From Dimorphilus gyrociliatus (taxonomy: Eukaryota > Animalia > Annelida), in contig CAJFCJ010000006.1 in assembly GCA_904063045.1 (NCBI GenBank), positions 2,594,946 to 2,658,945 of the forward strand: 64,000 nt of DNA, given 5' to 3'. The first letter of the stretch is position 1; every line of letters starts with the position of its first letter. Shown in pieces: positions 2,344-58,862 of the stretch. Both the position numbers and the translations under genes were made by a program. The notes beneath the pieces are model-generated. The model did not search any database. It had not been told where the DNA came from and worked only from the letters and a program-made list of their open reading frames with translations.

Positions 2344-4284
2344 TAAAAGAATGAAAGAAATCGCAAAAGATTGTTAAATTGAATATCTAAGTCATTCAGA
2401 ATATTTTAACAAAATATACATTTATTTAATTTTACTATAAAATTACCGGATATACTATAAAGCAAGTTTTTTTTATTAATAGACATAGCATTAAAATTTC
2501 ACAGGTCCTGGTATCGTATTGAGTTTCATAATTGCTGCAATATCAGTCGGTTTAAGTGCTCTGTGTTATGTGGAATTTGCAGCTCGAGTTCATAAAACGG
2601 GCGGCATCTATTTATATACTTATATGTGCCTTGGAGAATTTTGCGCCTTTTTGATTGGTTGGAGTACCTTAGTTCGTAAGTTGAAAATTTGATTAGTCAA
2701 CTTTCGTTACACTTTACATTTAGTTTTATATAAAGTTAATAAGTTTCTATTAACCTATATATATATTTTCATATGTTTTTTCCTTTATTTCTTTTAGTAA
2801 TTTCCGTTGGAGGAGCGACGAATGCCAGAGCTTGGAGTTCGTATTTGAACAGTTACACCGGGAATAGAATTGAAAATTGGACGATTCATCATGTGGCAGA
2901 TTGGAGATCTCTATCAAGACCTCTAGCTGGTTACCCAGATTTTGTTGCATCAGCAGTACTTATTGTTTTAGTTGCTATTGTTTCAATGGGAGCCAACTGC
3001 TCTGGAAAGTTTATGTCTGTAATGACAACTTTAAATATATCGGTATTATTGTTTGTTAGTATAGTTGGTTTCGCTGGTACAAAATCATTCAAAAACTGGA
3101 CATTTAATGGATTTCTTCCATTTGGAATTTCAGGTGTCATTGCAGGTGCTAGCAAGTGTTTTTGGGCACTATCCGGATTTGAGGCTATATTTACGGCAGT
3201 GGAGGAAGCAAAAACACCAAAGAGAGACATTCCTATTGCTACCGGCTTATCAATATCTGCTGTTACCATCCTTTATGTCATGACTTCAGCAGCCATTACA
3301 TTAGTGAAACCTTACAATAAATTAGATCCACACTCCCCTATTCCGAGTGCGATATCGTCGACTGGCTGGGAATGGGCAAGGCATATAGCAACAATCGGTC
3401 CTCTTCTTGGACTTACGACTACATTATTTACATCTATTTTCAGTTCAGCTAGGCAACTTTACGCTATGGGCGTTGACGGCCTTCTACCTCCTATAACAGC
3501 CAAGGTTAACGACTGCTCGAGGTTACCTCTCTTCAATATCTATTTTGTTGGGATTCTAATGGTTGTCTCTGCTTTGCTATTTGATCTCAGAGATCTTTTA
3601 TCGATGGCCGTTACAATAACACTCTCCCAGTACCTTCTTGTGAGTGCTGCAGTAGTTTATCTACGTTATAAACCAACTGTCCCAGTTCAGGAAAATGGTT
3701 TTTTACCAGTTAATGGGACAGACGAAGACGGTTATGCCTCAAGCGAAGAAACTAATCTCATGTCAAAATCAAAGGTTCGAAGGTCTAATGTAGGCAGTTT
3801 ACGACAGTGTATAGTAAAACGTGGCTGTAAGTCATCAGTTCCACAAGGGCACTGTGTTCTTCTCTCCATATTGCTTTATATTGTCGCCTCATTTATTTTC
3901 GGACTACTTATTAGATTAAACGCTTTCAGCTTTATGCTTAATGGTGATGAGCCTAGTGCAATTCTACTCACTATAGTATGTGTGGCCTTAATTGTCCTAA
4001 TTATCGTAATCTACATCCATGAAAAGTCAGATGCCAAAGATTTCGTTGTTAAGACGCCTTGCGTGCCTCTAATTCCCTGTCTTAGTATATCTACTAATGC
4101 TATACTGTTAGCTGTCAGTGCAAGTTGGTCAAGTTGGATAGTCTACGGTGCTGTTCTACTAAGTGGAGTAATGATTTATTTTCTCTATGGCATACGACAT
4201 AGCACACTAAATGATGAAAGGACAACAAAGACCTCTTCAGAACTGGAATTGCCTTTAATCGAAGATGACGACGACGAGTTATAA
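2022..4284 (+). CDS. Cationic amino acid transporter (SLC7/CAT family, APC superfamily), 3 exons
   Basis: Exons 2022-2190, 2505-2675 and 2798-4284 with GT-AG introns and matching phases. Motifs LGIGSMVGSGIYIVTGEAAKELAGPG, ALCYVEFAARV..TGG.YLYTY, FWALSGFEAI, and the C-terminal KTPCVPLIPCLSI typical of CATs. Confidence 0.93.
2285..2343. repeat. (GA)n microsatellite in SLC7 intron 1
   Basis: Directly visible GA run with interruptions. Confidence 0.9.
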
Positions 4285-4620
4285 GATTTTCCTCAGTTCT
4301 CTGACAAGTATACTCTGAAATTACTAGAAATTACTATAAGTCTGATCTTAACAAAGTAATGAAAATCATATTTTGACTTATGATTTAGGCTCTTTGAATA
4401 GTTGAATATAAAATATTAGTCTCTTTGTAATAAATATATTCATAACAAAAACATTCACAAACCAAGACAATATCTTTTATGTACACGAGTCCCATTTAGG
4501 CATGTATAAACGAACAAACACTCGTTTGCAGGTTGGACGTACTCTTGATATACTAGTAAGGCTTTTATCCTAAGCTGTCACGTGATGCTAAGATAAAATC
4601 CTCGTTTGTAAAAAATTGTG

Positions 4621-4661
4621 TGTATATATATATATATACTGTATATACATACATAAAATAA

Positions 4662-4706
<45 letters not shown>
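4621..4706. repeat. (TA)n microsatellites, representative of many in the window
   Basis: Long TA runs here and near 8548, 8750, 19958, 46348, 55861 and 57030. Confidence 0.9.
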
Positions 4707-4709
<3 letters not shown>

Positions 4710-4860
4710 AATAATTATCTTATTTAGATATAGACAACGGTCTCTAATAAAAAGACTAGATCAGGCTATAACAACGAGAAATAGTTTGTGTTTGATTTTC
4801 TCAAAAAAGTCCTCACTTCCTTGTCTGCTGTTTCCTCTCTTATAAAAAGTTTTTATCGAG

Positions 4861-7800
4861 TCAGACATGAGCTATGGGAGCTGAGAAGTGCGATCTGGAA
4901 TCAAACATACCCCCGATACTTCCTAGCTTGACGATAGATGAAGAATTGTGAGATTTTACACTAGCTGGAGGGGACGATGGTTTAAATCTACCGTATGAGT
5001 TGGCCCCAATGCTACTTGATAGTTGAGTAGTACCTGTAGAACTATGATTTGAACCTTGATTAGAGCTGTGAGATAGTTCTGCAAGACGATCGGCAAATTT
5101 TGTCAGCTCGTTTAGTAAACATAGGAAACTCGGTCTTCTGGTAGGTGATTCGTTCCAACAGTCAATCATCAAAGTTGAAATGATTTGTGGAGTGTCTGGT
5201 GATGGTCCAAGAATATGACGAAGTTGAATCTTTTCCATGACCTCTGCATTTGAGCAACCTGCATAAGGTTGAATACCCTGATTCCACATTTCCCAGAGAA
5301 GAACGCCAAAGCTCCAAATATCTGAGAAAGTCGTAAATTTACCATACATAATGCTTTCGGGTGCCATCCATCTTATAGGCAACATAGATGAATTTTGCAC
5401 CCTGTAGTAATCGCAGGAGTAAATGTTTCTGGCTAGGCCAAAATCTGATATTTTCACATTGAGACCCTCCGTCAAAAGCACATTACGAGCAGCTAAATCT
5501 CTATGAACAAACCGCCTGTCTGATAAATAAGCCATCCCAGAGGCGATTTGAATAGCAACAGTTGTCAAATCCCTGTTAGAGAGAGGCTCACCGGCCAATC
5601 TTCCATTAATTGAGTGAAGAACTAGTAGTTCGTGAAGGTCGCCCTGTGTCATATACTCGAATAGCATACACCATGGCTGTTGGCGAACAGAAACCCCAAT
5701 GAGGCTGACAACGCAAGGATGTTTGAGATCACGTAGAAGACGAGCTTCCCTCTCGAATTCACTAATGAGCCCATTATTCGGCCCGTCGTACTGTTTGAGC
5801 GTTTTAATTGCCACAGTCTGTCCTGTATATGACAATTCCCCCTTGTAGACTTTTCCAAAAGCTCCCTCACCCAGTTCATGGAGGAAGATAATTGAGTTCA
5901 AAGGAAAATGAGGTATATTCGGTAAGTTACTATGTCTATCTAACGCGTGTTGATGTTGACGTATTTCGACTGCTTTCAGAGGGGTTCCACTCCACGAATT
6001 GAAACGTCGCTTTCGGCACCAGCAAATGCAAATAAGGCCAAAGGTAAGGAAGAAGACGACAGCTATAGATGGCACTAATATCACCATTAGAGTATTGAAG
6101 CTCTTCTGTTCTTCTCCTGAGTCGGCTATATTTAATTTTAGGGGAGAAAAGAATAAACAAATTATGAAATATTCGTATAGATGTCGCTACGTATTATTGA
6201 TTCTGTCAAGTTGTAGGTTAAAAAAAAAAAGAAAAAGTAAAGCGCAGAGATTATCTAGTCTTAACTTTAGGCCTATATAATTATTAATACGATATAAAAT
6301 ACTATAATAGGCTTATCTATCTGCGTATTTTTTTTTTTGTTGACGGGAGGAGAAAGGAAGGAAATAATAAATTACAAGAGAAACAATAAAAAACTCACAG
6401 CATCTTTTGATATCGCATTTTTCAACTATTATCCCACCAGGAGATGCCTCTCTATAACACCAGGGGGCATCGTATTGGCCATTAGGATTTCGGCAATAAT
6501 TATGACCTGCGTAATCCTTGTAAGACTTCCCAGTCCACTTTTTACAGACCTTGCCAGAAATTGTCCGACTAACAAATCCTTTATATGAACTGCCATTGTC
6601 CTTGTAGCAGGACGGTTCGTAGTTATCTGTACAAAATACGTATTGATAAAGGTTTTTAGATGATTATTGTACCTGACATGTGCTTGTCAGTTCTTTTTTT
6701 TATTTTGCACTTGTATGGTAGCTTTGAAGGAGAGATAGAGAATTATATCTAATTTTATTCAAAATAACAAGTGTACCGTAACAGATAAATCGTAAAGGTT
6801 ATAACATTATTAGATAATGTTTATTATTATTTTTTCTCCTATATATTTATTATTGTAAGGTTATGTTATCATTAACTTCTTAATAGTTTAATTATAGGAT
6901 ATTTTATAGAAAGGGGCCCGGAATTTATAGGAAGAAAGGATTTTCTTTGGGTCAACGATTCGTTCGTTAACATTTAGTTGACAAATCTCCTCCCTCTAAT
7001 CAGTCAGTAATACTAATCTTTCTGATTAATCAATTGCATCATAATCCGTCTTCTTTATTTTTCTGTCGACTAATTGGACCCTACACTGCATTGTGTTAAT
7101 TACGTAAGGGGTAGGATACTAATGGGTAGAATTTATACATGCAGTCGTAAATATCCCTAAAGCAATAATGATTAGCTTGAAGGAAAATGCGTTATTCTAT
7201 ACGTCTCTCTTCTCTTGCTACCCAATGGTACTTACAATTTGATGTGGGTAATTTTACACAAAGACGGTTATCTGGCAGTCCTTCGCACGACGGTAGTTGG
7301 TGAGAGTACTGATCATATTCCCGAGAACAGAACTGGCGCTTAACCCATTCGCATTCGGATTTACATAACAATCTCGGCTGAGAGTTGGATGAGCAGGATG
7401 TGTAACGAGTAAGGCACAAGACTCGCTTGAGATAACTCTTACAGGTTTCGCCCAATTCATTAAGAAATGGCAGGCTCCGGGAATTGATCTCCATCAGTTT
7501 ACTTTCGATTTGTGATTGGGTCGATTTGCTGCCGACAAATACCATTTTATCCCCAAGATATTCTGAACAAGTTTCTCCCCTATACGGTTCGCAATAGCCA
7601 TCGCTGGGAGGATCCCTGTCCAAATGTACAATTTCCGGTGGTCTGTTAATTAAACAAAATATTATAAATCTCTCTTCTTTGTATGTATAAACACTCGTAG
7701 AATGTTTCAATTTGTCTTGTGGTGATAGAAAATCATTCATTTTAACGCCCCATAGTTGAAATGTGTAAATAAGCTTTTCGTGACTGAACTAACAAGTATG

Positions 7801-19196: not shown

Positions 19197-25476
<6,280 letters not shown>

Positions 25477-25821: not shown

Positions 25822-27042
25822 ATGAATAATATAAGATATCTGGTTAGGACCACAATAAGACTAAGTTCCAATATTCGTGGTGGTTCTTTGATTCCGCGTT
25901 CTACTTCTAGTGTAAAATCTCTTTACGAAGAACCAAAAATTCTCAAAGATTTAAGTAAAGTCTCTACAAAAATTAAAGATGTTAATAAATTTCCGATGGC
26001 AAGAGAAGAGATGACAAGTATAGCTGATCATATTCAAGAATGCAGCGCTGACGAAGTGATGGAGATTCTAATTAACCAACGACAATTAGACAAAGTACAT
26101 TTTGTTTTCGCAGTTAAGCAGCTAGATATCGTATCACAAAATTTTATAGGGGAAGAGGAGTTTGAAAGATATAAGAAATGGATATGGCAACAACCAGGAT
26201 TTTATGTGTAAGTTATGTAAAATCTCAAATAATACAACTAAGAAAGATCTATACCATCAGATTGTTAGAGAAGCTTGCCGAAAAATGCGTGTATTTTAAT
26301 GCAGAATCTACATTACAAATATTTACTAGCTTAAGGGCTTTAGATTTTCCAAATGACAGCACTTTAATTCAGGTTAGACAACCAAGTAGTTATTTTATAT
26401 TGATACTTTTGCGATTATCCTTTGTTTGTCGTAGGCTTATCTAAAGCTTCTAACGAAACACGTAAACGATCTACACTTTGATCAAGTGGTTCAATTGTTT
26501 GCTATTCTTACAAGTTTTGACAATTCGCTACCTAAAGAAGTTGGTATTCTGAAGAAACTATGCAAGAAGATATGCGATTGTAGAATTCTTGAGTCATGTG
26601 ATGTATTGGATGCTTATGGATTAATATTTCTTTTGGAGGTTTACAATGCCGAAATCTTTGAGAGTGAAGATAAAATTATTAGAATTTTAAATTGCTTGTC
26701 AGAGGAGAGAGCGTTTTTAGATTGGGAAAATATCATTGATATCTTATTGATAATGCGTAAAGATATCTTTGAGCTTTGTCCTGAATTTGCCAACTTTGTA
26801 ATTGATTACGCTTGGTGCGAGATGCCCTCTGAACTCACTCAAAGGTGATTTGATACTGAATGAATATAAATTTATTCAATTATTTACTTCTCTTTTCCTC
26901 TAATTTTAGGGAATCGGAAAAAATTATCCAAGTATGCAGAATATTTCCAGAACATTTGTATCTTAGCGAAGAAAAGCTAAATACTATTAAACTTAGGACA
27001 TTCAATTCAGAAACAACAATAAATACAAACGACAGCACATAA
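25822..27042 (+). CDS. Uncharacterised ~346-aa helical protein, possibly mitochondrial and FASTK-family-like; 4 exons
   Basis: Exons 25822-26207, 26261-26372, 26435-26844 and 26910-27042 join in frame. The Arg/Ser-rich, acid-poor N-terminus resembles a mitochondrial presequence. Leu-rich helical segments (LRALDFPNDSTLIQ) recall FASTKD N-termini; the family assignment is inference. Confidence 0.6.
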
Positions 27043-27363
27043 AAAATTCATATTCTCTCTTTTATACTCAATAAAAACATACTTTTTGTAATAATATTTT
27101 TTAATTTATTAATACTCTAAATCATACAAAGTTCAAAGTCAGTGTTATGTAATCCATCGACAGAGGGCGCTGCAATCGATATTACAGCAATATTCAAACT
27201 GAATGTATGTCTCCTCTAAACGTACTGTCCTTGACCAGTTTTGTAAGAGAGGTTTCTTTTGTACATACAAACTCAGTTTGTTGATTAGAGAGTAGAAGTG
27301 CTGTGTATTTTCAATTACAAACAATTTATGGATAAATAACGGCCCCTTAATTAATATGGTTTG

Positions 27364-30300
27364 ATGGCTATCGATCAAACTCTCTTATTCTTTCTTTCCA
27401 CTGCAATTTTTGGGTTGTGGTGCATCCAATGGCTTATCCACTTTTTTGCTATAGTTTATGCGTGAGTATAAGTCTTTTATTATATAAAACGCTGTATAGT
27501 AACGATGAATATGGTAATAAATACGAACACGTCATTGTCATCAGATGATATCGCTGACTCAATCTTCTACTTTCCTCTGAGTTAGGTCATCGATAAGATC
27601 GCGTCATTCAAATAAATCGGTTCACAAATAGTACAAAATATATTAAAATACACCAATGATATTGGTATTACTTTCAATTCTTGTTCAATAGAACGTTTTT
27701 ATTTTATTGACTACTACGAGAACTTTTTAACATGTATATTTTAGATGATTTTTCAATATTATGGAACATATGCTTGCTATAAACTATTGAGAATGTCTTC
27801 ATTTTTATCAATCTGACAATCAATAAACTATATTTCCCAGATATTTTTTCTTAGATATAAACATAGCACAACCGGAAATTAAAATCAGTAATGTTCTTTT
27901 AATAGAACACTTTAGAATGTTCTCTTTTCCATAATTTAGTAGAATGATGAACGTTTGTATTTTATTGGTTGTAATTCTATAAATGTAAAACGTTATTATT
28001 TATGTTTTATGATTAATCAATCGTATGTTTAAATATTTTCTTTATTATTTTTCTAATATATAGTAAATTGAAACTTTACAAAAAAGAAGAGGTAACGATA
28101 GATGGCTATCCCGGTGTTTCTATTCTTAAACCGTTAACCGGAGCGGATCCTAATTTATATGGAAACTTGGAATCATTCTTTACTTTGGACTATCCTATTG
28201 TAAGTATTTTTTTTTTGTTTATATCTTTCAATAGGAAAAAGTCTTCGCTTAAAAGATAAAGGGACAATATAGTATAAAGTATCTTTGCTCGAATGACAAT
28301 GTCTTCATTATTTTTATTTTTAAACAGTATGAATTACTTTTATGCGTTGCTGAAGATCTTGATTCTGCTGTTCCAATTGTTGAAAGTTTATTAAAAAAAT
28401 ATTCGAAAGTTAACGCTAAATTATTAACATCAGCTGAAAATGTTGGTGTTAATCCAAAGATTAACAACATGTTACAAGGCTATAACGTAGCGAGTTATGA
28501 GCTTATTCTTGTTTCTGATTGTGGAATTAAAGGTAAGATTTTATCGTTTTCTTTTGATTTATATCCTATCTCCTTTTATGACTGTTTTTGTAGTTAAACC
28601 AAATAGTTTGTCAGATATGGTAGAAAAAATGACAAAAGACGTAGGCTTAGTCCATCAAATGCCATACGTTTGCGATAGAAGTGGATTTGCCTCCTGCATA
28701 GAACAGGTGAGAATAAATGACGTTAGATATAATTTAATATTTTTTATACTTAAACATTTTGCGTGTAATTAAAATTACGATTAAACTATATTCATATTAG
28801 AATATATAGTATAGGAAAAAATTGTAGACACACTGAAATAATCGCTTTATATTATTACATAGAAAAGATGATGGCCTAATATTCACTTTTTGACAGTGTA
28901 TCTACTTTAGGGAAGAATACATTTACTTCTGATTATTGTCCAATTCAAACTATTTCTTATAGAAAAATGTAAAATATCCTATATCCATATATTTAATCAA
29001 TGAGTGTTTATTAAATTATTTCTTGTTTTTTTGTTGTTTTATTAAAACAACAAATCATTTGGATGAAATTTGATAAAATTATTAAAAGAATTCAGATCAA
29101 TTTCTTTCTATTATAAGGTCTTATTATATTGTTTCCCCTTCCTATAACTAGACTTCCTGTAGCTTCTCAGCTATAAAACGAATTAAATTAAATAAGAGAA
29201 TATACAGATCAATTGAGAGCTACAAGTATTTTTGTCTTAAGAAACAACGGCTCAGTACTATAAAATAGTAACAAATAATAAACAGAATAAATATCTAGTT
29301 TTCTATCTAAATAAAGCCTTGGTAGTTTATTTCGGAGAAGACTGCTTTCCTTTCTGCATCATATTGTTACCTCTTCAAAAGTGCCTCTAAAAGAAATTGT
29401 TTTCTCCTTTATGAGGTTCTACCAGTTTGCAAGACAAGGCATCTGAAGTTTGTTTCATCTACAGAGAGTGATGACTTTTGCTGCAGAAGCGAATATTGTG
29501 TTGTTGAAAGAAAGTATTTTTTTCTGATCGGTTCTTCTATTAGAATATTTTTAATTTTGTCTTAAGTCTTCCAAATAATTCTAATCTTCAAAATTGTTTC
29601 TAGATTTATTTCTATACAATTTTTTCTCTTTCCACTCTTAAAATCATAATTATGGGAATTGTTTGGCAAAATCGAGGTGGCAGCATTATTTATATCAATT
29701 TACAGGCTTTTAATGAAATTTTTTTCATGCTTTTATGTAAGGAAATAGTTTGAATTAGTTTATATAAAACTGTAAACATCATAATACCTTCTTCCTGCTT
29801 ACAGAGAAGATTCACTGTTTACAATAGACGACTATTATGTCATCGTATTCAGAAACAAAAACTATATACAGTTTTAACATGTCCATAATTCTCACCTTAC
29901 TATATATAAGCTGTACATATGTGAATGAAATTCCTTCATTGTAGAAAATTTTTTTGCTAGATTTTCTTTGGTTCCCGGTTTGCTAAATATTATCTGTTAT
30001 GTGATTTATTGGTAATCAACTGTACAACGGGAATGTGTCTATTATGTAGGAAAAGTTTAATTGATGAAGAAGGCGGTTTAGGAGCTTTTTCGCAGTATCT
30101 AGCAGAGGATTATTACTTAGCTAGTACAGTTTTAAATCGGTAAGAGAGAAGAAATCCCAGATAATGAACACTAACTATTTTCCCCATAGTTTCCTATGCA
30201 AATACGTAATTTTACTAGAAATAGTTATTTTTTTATATTTAATAAGCAATTAAGTATTACTAATCATAAATCATTAGTATTCTTATGAAGCATTTAACAT

Positions 30301-31152
30301 AAGGCTATAATAGTATTAAAGCTTAGCATGCTCTTTTTTACTTTATAGGTTTACTTCGGAACTCATCACGCTAAAATATACTTGAATGCTCAAATTTTGG
30401 GTCAAAACTGTATAACTGGAATGTCGGTAATGGTGCGAAAAAGTATCATTGACGAAGCTGGAGGCCTGCAGGCCTTTTCATCCTATATAGCTGAAGACTA
30501 CTATTTATCAGGAACAATTTTTGATCGGTTGGTTATATTAAATTAATTAGTTAACAATAGTTAGACAATCACGCTTTAATAAATAATGTGATTGATATAG
30601 TTTGCTTGGATTTAACATAGATGATTATTCACGATCATTTTGAAGTCTTTTTTCTTTGAAATATTTACATTTTACATAAACGGATTAATCTTTTTCCTAT
30701 TATTCAGAGGTTGGAAGGTACGTCTAGCTAGTCTTCCTGCCATGCAGAATCATGGAAACTCGACTTTAAAATCTTACCAAGCAAGAATGACTCGTTGGAG
30801 TAAATTACGTTCAGTTTTAGTACCGTTCGCGCATACTGTTGAACCAGTGACAGAAAGTATAGTCTTAGGAATCTTATCCTCTTGGGCGGCTTGGAATATA
30901 TTTAATTGCTCACCCTTAATCTTTTTCACGGCACATTTATTAGTGTGGATGATGCTGGATTATATTTTGTTACGGATAATTCAAAATGGAGAACTATCAT
31001 ATAGTCTTTTTAAATTTGGAACAGCTTGGGTTGTTCGAGAAATAAGTGGTATAGCTTGGTTTATTGCCTCCTGTACAGACTCTACTATTATATGGAGAAA
31101 TCGAAAATATAAAATAAAATGGGGGGGAATAGGAGAAGAAATAAAAAAATGA
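27364..31152 (+). CDS. UGCG: Ceramide glucosyltransferase (glucosylceramide synthase, GT21) with a duplicated alternative exon 5
   Basis: Exons 27364-27461, 28064-28200 ([22 protein letters not shown]), 28328-28532 ([14 protein letters not shown]), 28594-28706 (VGLVHQMP), 29961-30139 or 30349-30527 (AED), and 30708-31152 (RMTRWSKLR, the (Q/R)xxRW motif). Confidence 0.95.
29100..29890 (-). mobile_element. Highly decayed non-LTR retrotransposon 3' fragment, antisense in UGCG intron 4
   Basis: Minus-strand frames, broken by stops and frameshifts, give LYKLI, ..[37 protein letters not shown]. This resembles the post-RT C-terminal Cys/His region of LINEs. No database match was run. Confidence 0.5.
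29961..30139 (+). other. UGCG: UGCG alternative exon 5A (179 nt)
   Basis: TTTTTGCTAG acceptor and GTAAGA donor; stop-free; encodes [60 protein letters not shown]. Confidence 0.85.
30349..30527 (+). other. UGCG: UGCG alternative exon 5B (179 nt)
   Basis: CTTTATAG acceptor and GTTGGT donor; stop-free; encodes [60 protein letters not shown]. Confidence 0.9.
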
Positions 31153-31817
31153 AACACGTTAGAAAATTGTAATTATAGGAATAATTCATCTTTAATTTGA
31201 TTTTAAATGATTTAAATGATAAATTTGCATAAACGAAACAATTCCAACACCTCAAATGTTCAGTTTTCAATATCTAAATTGTCTAAATCAGTTTTTTCAA
31301 GTGTCCTTTAGAACTACATTTGACAAATTGACTTTTTACTGTGAGTCTTCTTAAAGATTTAATGAAAAACTGTTGTCCCTGGATAAAGTCAACAATTACA
31401 CAAATTTTGGTTCAGTAAGCCAGTACTTTCATCAGATTAATTTTGGTGTATTGTTCAAAATATGCCTAACTAAATGTGATTACTACAAGTCAATATGTTA
31501 ATTAATAGCATTGACATTATTACTTTTTTCTGACATTGTCATATACAGTCTACCAATATGTTGTGATTGTAGTTTAGTATACTTTTTGTACTTCCTTGTA
31601 GAAAATTTTACAAAAGCCAATATGTTATCATAATGATTGTTTTTCTAAATGATTATAACTGTTTTATATACATATATATATATATATGTATATAAGAAGT
31701 AAATATTTCAAGAATTTCTTCCACGAAACTTTATCAATGACAAATTGTTAACTTTATGTTTTCTTTTAAAACTACTGTTAAATAAAAAAATTAATACAAA
31801 TGCTTAAAAACTTTGAT

Positions 31818-33091: not shown

Positions 33092-34963
33092 ATGACAAAA
33101 TACTGCGTTTGTCAAATATGTAACTGCGGGTAAGTTGAATAATAATGATTTATTAAATAACTTTGATCTAGTCATAAAGAAACTAATAAACTTTTATGTG
33201 AAATTAAAGGAGACACCATTGTCCGGTTCATAAGCGTGGAGTTTTACGGGCAAAGAGTACTGGACCATGTCCAATTACGGAATATAATCAGAGATATAAG
33301 GAACATCCCTTACACCCTACTAAAACAGCCAAACCCGAAGCAACAGCTTTTAGAAGCGAACACCCTTTGGATGATAAAACGACACATAGGTAAATTATTT
33401 GTTATATCTATTGTCATTTCATATTTTCTTCCTTCTAGTTTTTCACTTTATTAATTTTTCGGATAATTCTAGATAAATATAAGACTTTTAATAAGATTGT
33501 TATCACTTTGCTACCAAATAACACTTCTTTTGAAACTTTTCTCTCATTTTCAGGAGAGATTTCATTAAACATCCTCTTGAGAGACCACATGTTCATCAAG
33601 CAGAAGATTATAAGAAGCCAGAAGGAAACTTTGAAGACATGACAAACTATCGCAAAGACTATGACCGTAAGTGAGCTTGTAGCTAAATTTAGACTCGGTT
33701 AATTATTTGCATACCTAAAATACCTTAGGTAAACAAGGAGAAAGGGCTAGAGCTGTGAAACCTGTTGATTTGAAGAAGGCCTTAGGACCATTTAAAGGGG
33801 AACCTACATATAAAAGTTCGTTTTATTTTGCTATTTGCAAAATTATGGATTATCATTCTTTAAAATAGGATTTGATTAGATCGATAGATTCTAATTGTCT
33901 TATCGATTCTATCTAATAAATATGAATATAGTTGTTCTGCCTTGTTTTAGGTGACTTCAGGAAATGGCCAATAGACCGCCATCTTCCTCATGTCAAAACT
34001 GATTATGCTCCTCCAGAGGCTAAATTCGAAGGTTTACCTACTTATAAGAAAGATTACATAAAATATAACGAAGCCCCAAGACAATCAATGAAACCTGTTG
34101 AGTTGGCTAGAGGACCAGATCAACCGTTTGACGATAGAACTGGATACAGAGATCATTATATTAAACATCCTCTACCAGAGAAAGCACTTAAGGAAAAGGA
34201 ATGTTGGAAACCTAACAAGGCTCCATTGGATGGATTATCAAATTATAAGAAGGATTATGTTGAAAAGCACGGCGGACCTATGGCCAGCTGTAAACCAGAC
34301 GCATCGGCGTTTAAGAGTGGCGCTCCACTGGAAGATACGACTACACATAGAAATGACTTTAAGAAATGGGATGCTGAACGACCCTTCGTTCACGAACCTG
34401 ATCAGTATCGAAAGCCAGAAGGAAATATTGATTTAAATACAACGCATAAAACAGATTTCACTCAAAAACCTTTATCTAAACCAAAATCGATGAAACCACT
34501 CGATGCTAAGAAAGTACCGGGAAATTTTACAGATAAGACAAATTATAAGGATGATTACAAGAAGTGGCATATGGAAAGGGAAAGACCAGTGGTTAAAGCC
34601 GATTACTCCCCTCCAGAAGCTCCTTTCGAAGGCCTACCTACGTACAAGAAAGACTATGTTAAATACAACGAAGCACCGAGAAAATTAATGAGACCAGCAG
34701 AAGGCGGTATTCAAAGCGATGCTCCTTTCGATGATCAAACAATGTACAGAACAGAGTACATTAAGAAGGACAATCCACCTTGCCCTGCCGCTATAATAGA
34801 ATCAGCGAGTTCAAAATTCCAATTTAAAGAGCAGGATGACAGCGGTCATAAATGGTATGAACCTGTAAATGGTAAGTCGTCAATGACAACTCAACCAGTA
34901 CCAAGAACTTACAGCGCCTCTCAACAAATTAAGAATAATAACGAAGGTCTAGTATGTGCTTAG
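33092..34963 (+). CDS. SAXO: Stabilizer of axonemal microtubules (SAXO/FAM154), Mn-repeat microtubule inner protein, 5 exons
   Basis: N-terminal MTKYCVCQICNCG|RHHCP motif of SAXO1/2, then twelve T-x-Y/H-x-x-D-Y/F Mn modules. Exons begin at 33092, about 33210, 33555, 33730 and 33951. Confidence 0.9.
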
Positions 34964-39200: not shown

Positions 39201-40304
39201 TTAACCAGTTGTACTAATTATAGTTGTTCTTGATATACTTCTTGTAAATTCTATTCTACCATGAGTTTCCTGTTGACTATATCTCCAAAACTTTAACATA
39301 TCCATATAAGATTCTCTAAACGTTTCCAAACTGAATGCGTAAATTATCGGATTACAAACGCTATTTAAAAGTAGCAAAATGAAAACTGTCGATAAAAGCC
39401 AAGAATCATTTGACCAATTATACTCCTCTTCCTTATGATCCACTCTAATTAGATAGATGATGATAAATGGTAGATTACACATTAAGAATAAGAACACAAG
39501 TGGGCATAGTTTTAGAGCTGTCCTATTATGGCTGTGCTCCCTGTCAGTTGTTTTGAAAATTGGAGCTAAAAGTTTGTTCTTTTTCGTCTTGTAAATAATT
39601 ATAAGGTATATAAATATGGTCCCGAATACCAGAGAAGAGAGAAATATCAAACTCGATACTATATATTCCTTTGTAAATACTTTTACGTAGGAGCATTGAT
39701 CTTTCCAATCCTTAGTTTCTAAATATTTCTCAAAGAAGAATGGTACAAGACAAAAGCATAAATTAAAAACAATAGTACAAATAACAAGGATAATTATCCT
39801 TCTTTGACTTAGAAGGAATTTATAGTGAAGAGGACGTAGGAGAGATAGCAAACGATGAACGGAAAGTACTGGAAAATCATGTATAAAAGAGAGAATAAGA
39901 TTACAATGTATATTAAAAATTAACTTACGAAATATGAAGGATATAGAACAGGAAACTGGGATCATAATACACGTAAATTTGAGTATGCATACATGATAAT
40001 TCTTTTGTAGTTCAGGTTGAAGCTTTATAGATATATTTAAGAGAGCAGTAAAACCAGTCACTAAGTCACTCAATGATAAGGCAGCAACAAAAATATTGAC
40101 TCTTTTTCTAACTTTTCCATATTTATAAAAAACCAGCAATACTAGTATATTACCTAGAATGCTGGCAAAGGCTATTACTGTTTGAGCAACTATTTCAACA
40201 GTCGTATTCTCACTTATTCCCGACTTTCTAGAATTCGATATTAATTGGTGTATTAGGTCCTTATTTGTAACATTTTCCTGCACACTGTTACTTCTCATTT
40301 CCAA
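39201..40304 (-). CDS. Orphan class A (rhodopsin-like) GPCR; one 60-nt intron at 39869-39928
   Basis: Seven hydrophobic segments with GN..V (TM1), LSLSDL (TM2), HRL at the DRY position, CNLP (TM6) and CNPIIY (NPxxY). Confidence 0.88.
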   Translation of the reverse strand: MEMRSNSVQENVTNKDLIHQLISNSRKSGISENTTVEIVAQTVIAFASILGNILVLLVFYKYGKVRKRVNIFVAALSLSDLVTGFTALLNISIKLQPELQKNYHVCILKFTCIMIPVSCSISFIFRKLIFNIHCNLILSFIHDFPVLSVHRLLSLLRPLHYKFLLSQRRIIILVICTIVFNLCFCLVPFFFEKYLETKDWKDQCSYVKVFTKEYIVSSLIFLSSLVFGTIFIYLIIIYKTKKNKLLAPIFKTTDREHSHNRTALKLCPLVFLFLMCNLPFIIIYLIRVDHKEEEYNWSNDSWLLSTVFILLLLNSVCNPIIYAFSLETFRESYMDMLKFWRYSQQETHGRIEFTRSISRTTIISTTG

Positions 40305-57432: not shown

Positions 57433-58862
57433 TTACGTTGGTTCTTCGAATTCTTCTGCAAGAAAACTTGTTAAATTACGGGGAATTAATGGGCTAACAA
57501 GGCTTGTAATCTCTTTGGCTTCTTCAGCTCCGCCTGTCTTATTGAACAATTCTTTGCCCAGATCGAATATCCTTTTTATTGTCTTTTCCTCAATGAGAAT
57601 AAGGGGTCGTTCTCCGTCAATTGGCTTCCTTGGTTCGTTTATTTTATCCAATTCTTTCCATGTGTCTCTTTCCCATAGCTCCCTCATAACATCAGGTATG
57701 TCAAGGTCTGCGTATCGATGCATATTTTCGTAATCTACTTCACCAATTCTGTCTGCTACTGGTCGGAAAGCTAGTAATATGTCTAAAAGTCGGCTCATTG
57801 TCTTCCGAGAATCATTTCGAGTTCTATCCAACACAGTTTGAAGGCATCCCAACATTTCTGATCTCATTTTTTCAGCTTTTTCTTTAAATTGTAAAGTACA
57901 TCGGTCAGTTGTTAACAGACTCACAGCTGCAAATAGTGCCCTCTCTTCGCTTGTTAAATGCATCTGTTGTATATTTCCTATTAGCTCCAAAAGACGAGAT
58001 GCAACAGGTTGGCGGGGATCATTGTCATCTAGAACATCCAATTGAATCTTATGCATAGCTCTATGACCGTTTACGTAAATAGTTTCCTGAGCTTCGTCCG
58101 TTGTAAAATTAGCAGCCATAAATATAAACTCTCTATGATTATTCTTAACAAGGCTAACTTGATCACTTAGTGGTATATCTCTCCAACCTGGAATGCCTTT
58201 TGCAAAGGTTATTAAAGCTTTCGTACATAATGCCATATTTTCAGCTTCGTATCTGATGAATTGTTTCTCCCTCTCAGGATAAGACCTACTTACTTCTCTC
58301 CTGACAACGGTTGCATCAATCCACCTTACCCTGAGTAGTTCAAGAGATAGTCTAGTAAGTTCTGATATGATTTTTTCTTGCTCATTGTCATTTGTAGGAG
58401 GAGAGCTCGAAGACGAAATGGACGCGTCTGACATTGACGAACGTCTCTTTTGTAATTGAGCGTCTCTGGCAGTTTCTGCTGAATAGCGTCCAAAACGACT
58501 TTTCGTCCTGGACATTCCCAAAGCAATACATTTAGCAGCTCTACACGACATACAATTGTTCCTCCTTCTAGCCTTAATTTCACATTTTCCATCTTTTCGA
58601 CAGGCAGGGGGTTGTTGAATAAGAGTTCGTCGAAAAAAAGACTGGAATATAATTAACAAAGATGTCACAAATCAATAAAAACTACGTAATAATGCCGTGA
58701 AAGTTGATCACCTATTAAATTATTTTAAGCGAAATTATAACACCTTACCTTACAAGCTTCGCAAGTGAAGATACCGTAATGTAATCCTGTAGCCTGATCT
58801 TGACATACTCCACATAATGGCATATCCAAATCGGTTGGTTTTGTTAACTTTGAATCCGTCAT
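57433..58862 (-). CDS. Orphan nuclear hormone receptor (DBD plus LBD plus long F domain), 2 coding exons
   Basis: Exon 58862-58749 (CGVCQDQATGLHYGIFTCEACK) and exon 58641-57433 (SFFRR..CRKDGKC..CMSCRAAKC..GM; LBD signature FAKGIPGW..IPLSDQVSLV; AF2-like PDVMRELWE). Confidence 0.93.

Follow-up and report, generated by a model that had tools for sequence, protein, structure and literature searches.

A ceramide glucosyltransferase gene with two copies of exon 5

We analysed a window of 64,000 nt (the whole stretch of DNA, in whose numbering all positions are given) from the genome of the annelid Dimorphilus gyrociliatus. On its + strand, at 27364-31152, lies a complete six-exon gene for ceramide glucosyltransferase (UGCG, family GT21), in which exon 5 is present as two tandem copies, here called 5A and 5B. 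Exon 1 (27364-27461) holds the start codon and, as read from the sequence, an N-terminal hydrophobic segment; it is followed by exon 2 (28064-28199), exon 3 (28328-28532), exon 4 (28594-28706, ending in phase 0), exon 5A (29961-30139, donor GTAAGA), exon 5B (30349-30527, donor GTTGGT) and the last exon, exon 6 (30708-31152), with the stop codon at 31150-31152. All of these exons, including those downstream of 5A, are on the + strand and have AG/GT borders, and the coding sequence, counting a single exon 5, amounts to 1176 nt, i.e. 391 codons plus stop. An exon-by-exon tblastn search found a counterpart of every exon, exon 2 included, in the UGCG genes of five spiralians.

The Pfam profile PF13506 (Glyco_transf_21; curated cut-off 21.7 bits) is matched at consecutive positions 3-137 by exon 3 (positions 3-41, E 1.1e-8), exon 4 (44-81, E 1.2e-8) and both copies of exon 5 (83-137; E 7e-12 and 45.6 bits for 5A, E 5e-13 and 49.3 bits for 5B), each exon scoring 35-49 bits; exon 6 extends the match to positions 141-174 with a score below the cut-off. 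Among the motifs of GT21 enzymes, E-D-Y (residues 235-237) occurs in each copy of exon 5, and R-M-T-R-W, a form of (Q/R)xxRW, in exon 6; S-D-C-G, the putative first catalytic Asp motif, was read directly from the translation of exon 3. The alignment of both exon 5 peptides (5A being translated from 29961 to 30140) with the solved chains 26qf and 26qs is gap-free and covers residues 187-246 end to end.

5A and 5B are each 179 nt long, share the same phase and have their own AG and GT splice sites; they are 55% identical as protein (E 8e-26) and 59% identical as DNA. A tblastn search with both peptides found no third copy in the window. Neither double inclusion nor double skipping keeps the frame: the first meets a stop after 11 codons of 5B, the second after 7 codons of exon 6. 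Because either event ends in an early stop, 5A and 5B would be usable one at a time only. With regard to the splice sites themselves, 5B, the exon in use, has the weakest donor of the gene (GTTGGT, 30528-30533), and the unused-looking 5A has a strong one (GTAAGA, 30140-30145).

The G+C content of 31% and the UGCG introns of 61-209 nt agree with the published description of the Dimorphilus gyrociliatus genome, in which splicing is tuned to short introns, with more retention in long ones (PMC7854359). The intron before 5A (1254 nt) is unusually long for this species, since the median intron of its genome measures 66 bp (PMC7854359). No RNA structure that might govern exon choice stood out when 29900-30760 was folded (z = 0.63, no better than shuffles), and a search of 27000-31700 against Rfam (E up to 0.1) returned no known RNA family.

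Same-strand ORFs upstream of UGCG include a formin FH1-like piece (22737-23342, Pfam PF06346), and the RNA contig that carries UGCG exons 1-4 (contig 1, 5551 nt) has 4833 nt before window position 27200 that are continuous with these exons; the upstream gene and UGCG may abut or read through in this compact genome (22337-27461). Further ORFs with Pfam matches (within 2773-7740, 33932-34960, 39204-40304 and 57436-58668) include an amino-acid permease (+), a SAXO1/2 axonemal microtubule stabiliser (+), a rhodopsin-type receptor (-) and a nuclear hormone receptor (-); a neighbouring tyrosine-kinase domain (-), close to a Frizzled-type domain, resembles a receptor of the Ror/MuSK type.

Distribution, divergence and selection

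In the five spiralian loci compared, three from annelids (Lamellibrachia, Owenia and Helobdella) and two from nemerteans (Tubulanus and Lineus), with no dinophilid among them, UGCG has a single exon 5 with the same 60-residue borders, and the duplication of exon 5 looks lineage-specific in this comparison. The full-length word searches, with a copepod and an Owenia protein as queries, gave no close relative among the best 120 matches of either, nor the annotated protein of the gene itself; the best protein match reached ~55% of the self score.

For a survey of exon 5 we combined an exhaustive HMMER search with 5A and the two full-length word searches, which yielded 300 distinct segments from 354 proteins. 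The HMMER search gave 224 matches, none of which exceeds 59% identity or is specifically 5A-like, and among the short proteins (33-105 aa) of a 5.8-billion collection, to which a further search was confined, none shares three 5-residue words with 5A. Two HMMER matches with two matched stretches were considered as exon pairs and rejected: one (P0001) is a doubled gene model, and the other (P0002), a Bulinus truncatus model of 2355 aa, contains two GT21 copies that have diverged from each other. P0018, the sequence closest to 5B, was likewise discarded as a carrier of an exon pair; it lies on an 827-nt, CA-repeat-rich contig with one exon 5 and no second copy.

Of all exon 5 sequences in this sample, 5A is the most strongly derived. 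At position 212, where all 300 segments have Ser, 5A has Cys, and its Val204 is found in none of the other segments. Residues that occur in less than 1% of the family number seven in 5A and three in 5B, the maximum among 252 near-complete relatives being six. In a tree of exon 5 peptides the terminal branch of 5A measures 1.08 and that of 5B 0.50 (plus 0.37 shared with one relative), the median being 0.23. The tree is a star that places neither 5A nor a sisterhood of 5A and 5B; measured from its unresolved base, the path to 5A is about 1.5 times that to 5B, not many-fold longer. Nine of the ten family positions that are fixed at 99-100% are retained in 5A, which keeps Phe189, Gly190, Cys207, Gly210, Met211, Gly225, Ala234, Glu235 and Asp236.

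Comparing 5A with 5B, we obtained a pS of 0.78 (saturated) and a pN of 0.30; third positions differ in 35 of 59 codons, and the 60-nt flanks of the two copies are 38% and 28% identical, which is the chance level for their base composition. Neutral drift was simulated with the base composition of the introns in 20,000 trials, counting sequences that kept an open frame and at least 32 of 59 identities to 5B. Such sequences arose in 0 of 20,000 trials when half of the third-position distance was assigned to drift, in 1.3% when a quarter was, and in 20% when a tenth was. Since the open frame and the protein identity have been kept while third positions and flanks were randomised, the comparison indicates that protein-level selection acted on 5A during most of its history. 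Recent relaxation or loss of function, with the final tenth of the third-position distance accrued by drift, would be compatible with the same data.

The two copies in the RNA of run X1

One public run contains the stretch (X1, from 2017). It is kept as contigs, and these are spliced, which identifies their source as RNA. Contigs of this run drop rare variants and carry one mean depth each, so that an absent joint is weak evidence and parts of a contig cannot be ranked by depth. Contig 1 (depth 122) joins exons 1-2-3-4 (e.g. 27461->28064 and 28199->28328), and contig 5 (depth 541) leads from the end of exon 4 into 5B (28704->30347, cut +2), from there into exon 6 (30526->30707, cut +1) and on into the 3' UTR. 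5B is the copy used in the RNA seen. No joint from exon 4 to 5A or from 5A to exon 6 is listed in the contigs of X1, and contigs 1 and 5 are unbroken beyond the points where 5A junctions would branch off. The splice switch in glycolipid output that had been proposed in a sequence-only reading of this DNA does not find support here, the sole run showing exon 4->5B->6 and no 5A junction; a minor exon 4-5A-6 message is possible alongside these contigs.

The 5A region is transcribed, and it is found in RNA solely in contig 4 (+ strand, 854 nt, depth 47). This contig begins with a short piece of intron 4 (29226-29254), which is spliced over a 62-nt GT..AG intron (29255-29316; joint 29254->29317), and then continues from 29317 to 30141 without a break. 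Within it, 644 nt of upstream intron (29317-29960, without a long ORF) lead straight into 5A, and at their end an in-frame stop (TAG, 29958-29960) directly before 5A closes the 5A frame. The contig ends at 30141, two bases past the end of 5A at its donor, and coverage of the 5A-5B intron is zero, which suggests that the 5A donor is used. The last two letters of the contig, GT, are compatible with the intron and with the beginning of 5B, but not with exon 6; from the breakage of the contig, rather than from a reported joint, we infer that some of this RNA is spliced from 5A to 5B, out of frame. Depth is zero over 29072-29215 and then 47 over 29226-30141, the other intron contigs having depths of 12 and 22. 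A transcription start inside intron 4, or a splicing intermediate, may lie behind contig 4.

The main rival to the reading favoured below, possible if on balance somewhat unlikely, is that 5A no longer makes protein. It would then be a relic or a poison exon, skipped or included together with 5B or with retained intron, and the resulting early-stop messages would be degraded or would lower the output of enzyme. The joining of exons 4 and 6 to 5B alone fits this explanation, as does the presence of 5A in RNA with upstream intron, behind an in-frame stop; the end of contig 4 at 30141 with GT is what would be expected from a 5A->5B junction branching off unspliced RNA, and such double inclusion meets its stop 11 codons into 5B. 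The strong divergence of 5A, including the replacement of the invariant Ser, points the same way. However, a poison exon need not preserve enzyme sequence, and 5A has kept nine of ten fixed positions, its exact length and an open frame; moreover, the absence of a joint from one small contig run weighs little.

We regard as improbable that contig 4 represents a separate transcript that starts in intron 4 near 29216-29226 and is either non-coding or encodes no more than a shortened C-terminal fragment without catalytic activity, in which case 5A would owe its coding look to an older role. Such a transcript would agree with the rise in depth from zero to 47, two to four times that of the other intron contigs, with the removal of the 62-nt intron at 29255-29316 and with the lack of a long ORF in 29317-29960. 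Yet the contig depths are single means, which cannot rank parts, and the depth gap adjoins a low-complexity stretch skipped in mapping (29014-29053). No Rfam family matches, and the retained protein sequence of 5A would be left unexplained.

Position 193 and the active-site residues

The sequence-only reading described 5B as VYFGTHHAK, with His at position 193, and 5A as IFFGSRFAK, with Phe there. The translations and the alignment to 26qf and 26qs agree with it, residue 7 of the exon being position 193 because exon 5 aligns without gaps to 187-246. The residue before 193 is indeed Arg in 5A and His in 5B, and the cysteines that 5A was said to have gained are there: four (exon positions 14, 21, 26 and 29) versus one in 5B (21). 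The interval 29961-30000, to which this comparison had been tied, spans the start of 5A alone; 5B starts at 30349.

For the human enzyme, in silico work assigns His193 to a hydroxyl of the ceramide head and describes a headgroup pocket with Phe205, Cys207, Tyr237 and Leu284; UDP-glucose is oriented by Gly210, Trp276 and Val208, and the metal is held by Asp144, Glu235 and Asp236 (PMC9996764). According to the citation of Wu et al. 1999 in that paper, His193 was placed in the UDP-glucose- and PDMP-binding region and its replacement abolished sensitivity to PDMP. In a docking study, His193 is critical for inhibitor binding and the Thr209-Gly210 stretch lies at the sugar nucleotide (PMC11900012). 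The assumption that 193 is a pocket site is thereby upheld, since the modelling in PMC9996764 and the mutagenesis that it cites (Wu et al. 1999) both locate this residue in the pocket for the ceramide headgroup and PDMP. Cys207, Gly210, Glu235, Asp236 and Tyr237 are identical in 5A and 5B. The positions of the pocket map that differ between 5B and 5A are 193 (His/Phe), 205 (Gln/Ile) and 208 (Ile/Thr); from 5B to 5A, 204 also changes from Gly to Val and 212 from Ser to Cys. As the metal ligands and Gly210 are unchanged, the differences fall, on this map, mostly on the acceptor and inhibitor side, with the exception of 208, which is a listed UDP-glucose-orienting position.

Position 193 varies widely in nature. 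In the 300 segments it is His in 175 (58%), Gln in 79 (26%), Phe in 16 (5%), Leu in 13 (4%) and Val in 6; Met and Ala (4 each) and Tyr, Pro and Asn (1 each) are rare. Phe193 occurs in the ostracod Cyprideis torosa and in the annelid Lamellibrachia satsuma, in Lamellibrachia in the sole exon 5 of the UGCG locus, and the Leu193 sequences with a named source are gastropod UGCG-like genes (Bulinus, Batillaria). One further Phe193 sequence (P0007), considered as a 5A-like alternative exon, was rejected, since it proved to be the only exon 5 (6049-6225 in the numbering of that locus) of a UGCG-like gene on a 1.1-Mb contig from a eukaryote in an ENA metagenome assembly. A degraded second copy of this exon (P0092), with motif residues lost, lies on another long contig from the same kind of assembly. 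Among the insects that carry a name in the sample, which represent Diptera, Coleoptera, Hymenoptera, Orthoptera, Hemiptera and Odonata, Gln193 is the rule. Insects build their glycolipids on glucosylceramide, which speaks against a change of sugar donor on loss of His193.

The view that a conserved donor-binding residue has been lost in 5A is therefore not supported, as animal enzymes naturally have His, Gln, Phe, Leu or Val at 193; on the sequences compared, replacement of His193 is ordinary family variation, and because of this variation its absence alone implies no new sugar donor. Positions 193 and 208 co-vary in animal ceramide glucosyltransferases, His208 being found in 61 of 79 Gln193 segments and in 4 of 175 His193 segments; judging by this pattern, insects seem to have shifted the His from 193 to 208 inside the pocket. 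In Drosophila larvae PDMP serves to inhibit GlcT1 (PMC6202054), indirect evidence that fits the idea that His193 is not indispensable.

That the 5A isoform uses another sugar (UDP-Gal, UDP-Xyl or UDP-GlcNAc) through the loss of His193, with splicing switching the kind of glycolipid, is highly improbable: 193 and its neighbours do differ, His193 was placed in the UDP-glucose/PDMP-binding region (Wu et al. 1999, as cited in PMC9996764) and the unique Ser212Cys adjoins the Thr209-Gly210 stretch docked at the sugar nucleotide (PMC11900012), but the named insects have Gln instead of His193 and further animal homologues have Phe, Leu or Val there, the modelling paper assigns it to the ceramide hydroxyl and not to the sugar (PMC9996764), Gly210, Glu235 and Asp236 are unchanged in 5A, and the 5A isoform is not seen in run X1.

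Interpretation of the exon pair

In our reading, to which we give a probability of about one half, 5A is an alternative coding exon that is maintained by selection and used rarely or conditionally, 5B is the default, and the enzyme made with 5A probably still produces glucosylceramide. 5A and 5B would have arisen by tandem duplication of exon 5 in a single UGCG gene, in the worm's own lineage. 5B would build the standard enzyme and be the default choice, and 5A would be retained by selection as a coding alternative for rare or particular conditions. Its inclusion would swap one acceptor-side wall of the active site (His193 to Phe, Gln205 to Ile, Ile208 to Thr, Gly204 to Val and Ser212 to Cys), with no change in the metal and UDP-sugar residues of this exon. 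The 5A form would most likely be a UDP-glucose:ceramide glucosyltransferase that differs in ceramide handling, kinetics, stability or sensitivity to PDMP-type inhibitors. The exon anatomy, the residue differences, the selection on 5A and the use of 5B are observed here; splicing of 5A between exons 4 and 6 at any time, and any difference in biochemistry, are our inference. The altered donor, acceptor and inhibitor profile suggested for 5A in the sequence-only reading survives in part: 193, at the headgroup/PDMP pocket, differs in an intact, selected exon, and a change of sugar donor does not follow, given the natural variation at this position; Gly210, Glu235 and Asp236 are unchanged.

A bolder version would have one gene encode two glycolipid synthases by an active-site exon swap, the 5A form, with Phe193, Cys in place of the invariant Ser212 and no His208, having a different acceptor or donor preference (another ceramide class or sugar), perhaps redox-sensitive through its three extra Cys, in particular cells, stages or the dwarf male. 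This we consider a long shot; if true, the entry step of glycosphingolipid synthesis would for the first time be seen to offer a choice set by splicing.

Synthesis of most glycosphingolipids in animals starts with this one enzyme, UGCG, at which drugs are aimed (eliglustat, miglustat, PDMP), and a natural exon pair that swaps residues 187-246 would be a ready-made experiment on which residues of the acceptor pocket tolerate change. If 5A is used, UGCG joins the enzymes with a splicing-edited active site; if it is unused, 5A shows that a spare exon can stay conserved for long. The survey also advises caution with His193, which is often treated as key and is His in only ~58% of the animal sequences compared.

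Comparison with known systems

The worm gene has the same family and architecture as mammalian UGCG/GCS (GT21; 26qf, 26qs): exon 5 corresponds to residues 187-246, 5B keeps His193, the R-x-x-R-W motif is common to the mammalian enzyme and worm exon 6, and Cys207, Gly210, Glu235, Asp236 and Tyr237 are present in both worm copies. The UGCG literature that we found includes no account of the solved structures and describes no alternative active-site exon, whereas the worm gene has a duplicated exon 5 whose second copy carries Phe193, Cys212 and Val204.

5A and 5B most likely form a lineage-specific mutually exclusive exon pair, a fresh example of a known gene architecture; a literature search found no report linking mutually exclusive exons with UGCG. 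They resemble other mutually exclusive, tandem-duplicated exons in adjacency, homology, equal length and phase, separate splice sites and the rules of frame. Unlike that class, the pair shows 5B alone spliced into mRNA in the run seen, has no competing RNA structure in the fold, and is absent from the annelids and nemerteans checked.

With regard to position 193, 5A resembles the Gln193 enzymes of insects (usually with His208) and the Phe193 genes of Lamellibrachia satsuma and Cyprideis torosa, all of which do without His193; the Phe193 enzymes also do without His208, as 5A does. In these natural non-His193 enzymes, however, the residue lies in the only exon 5 found and Ser212 is kept, whereas in the worm it lies in an alternative exon in which Ser212 has been replaced by Cys.
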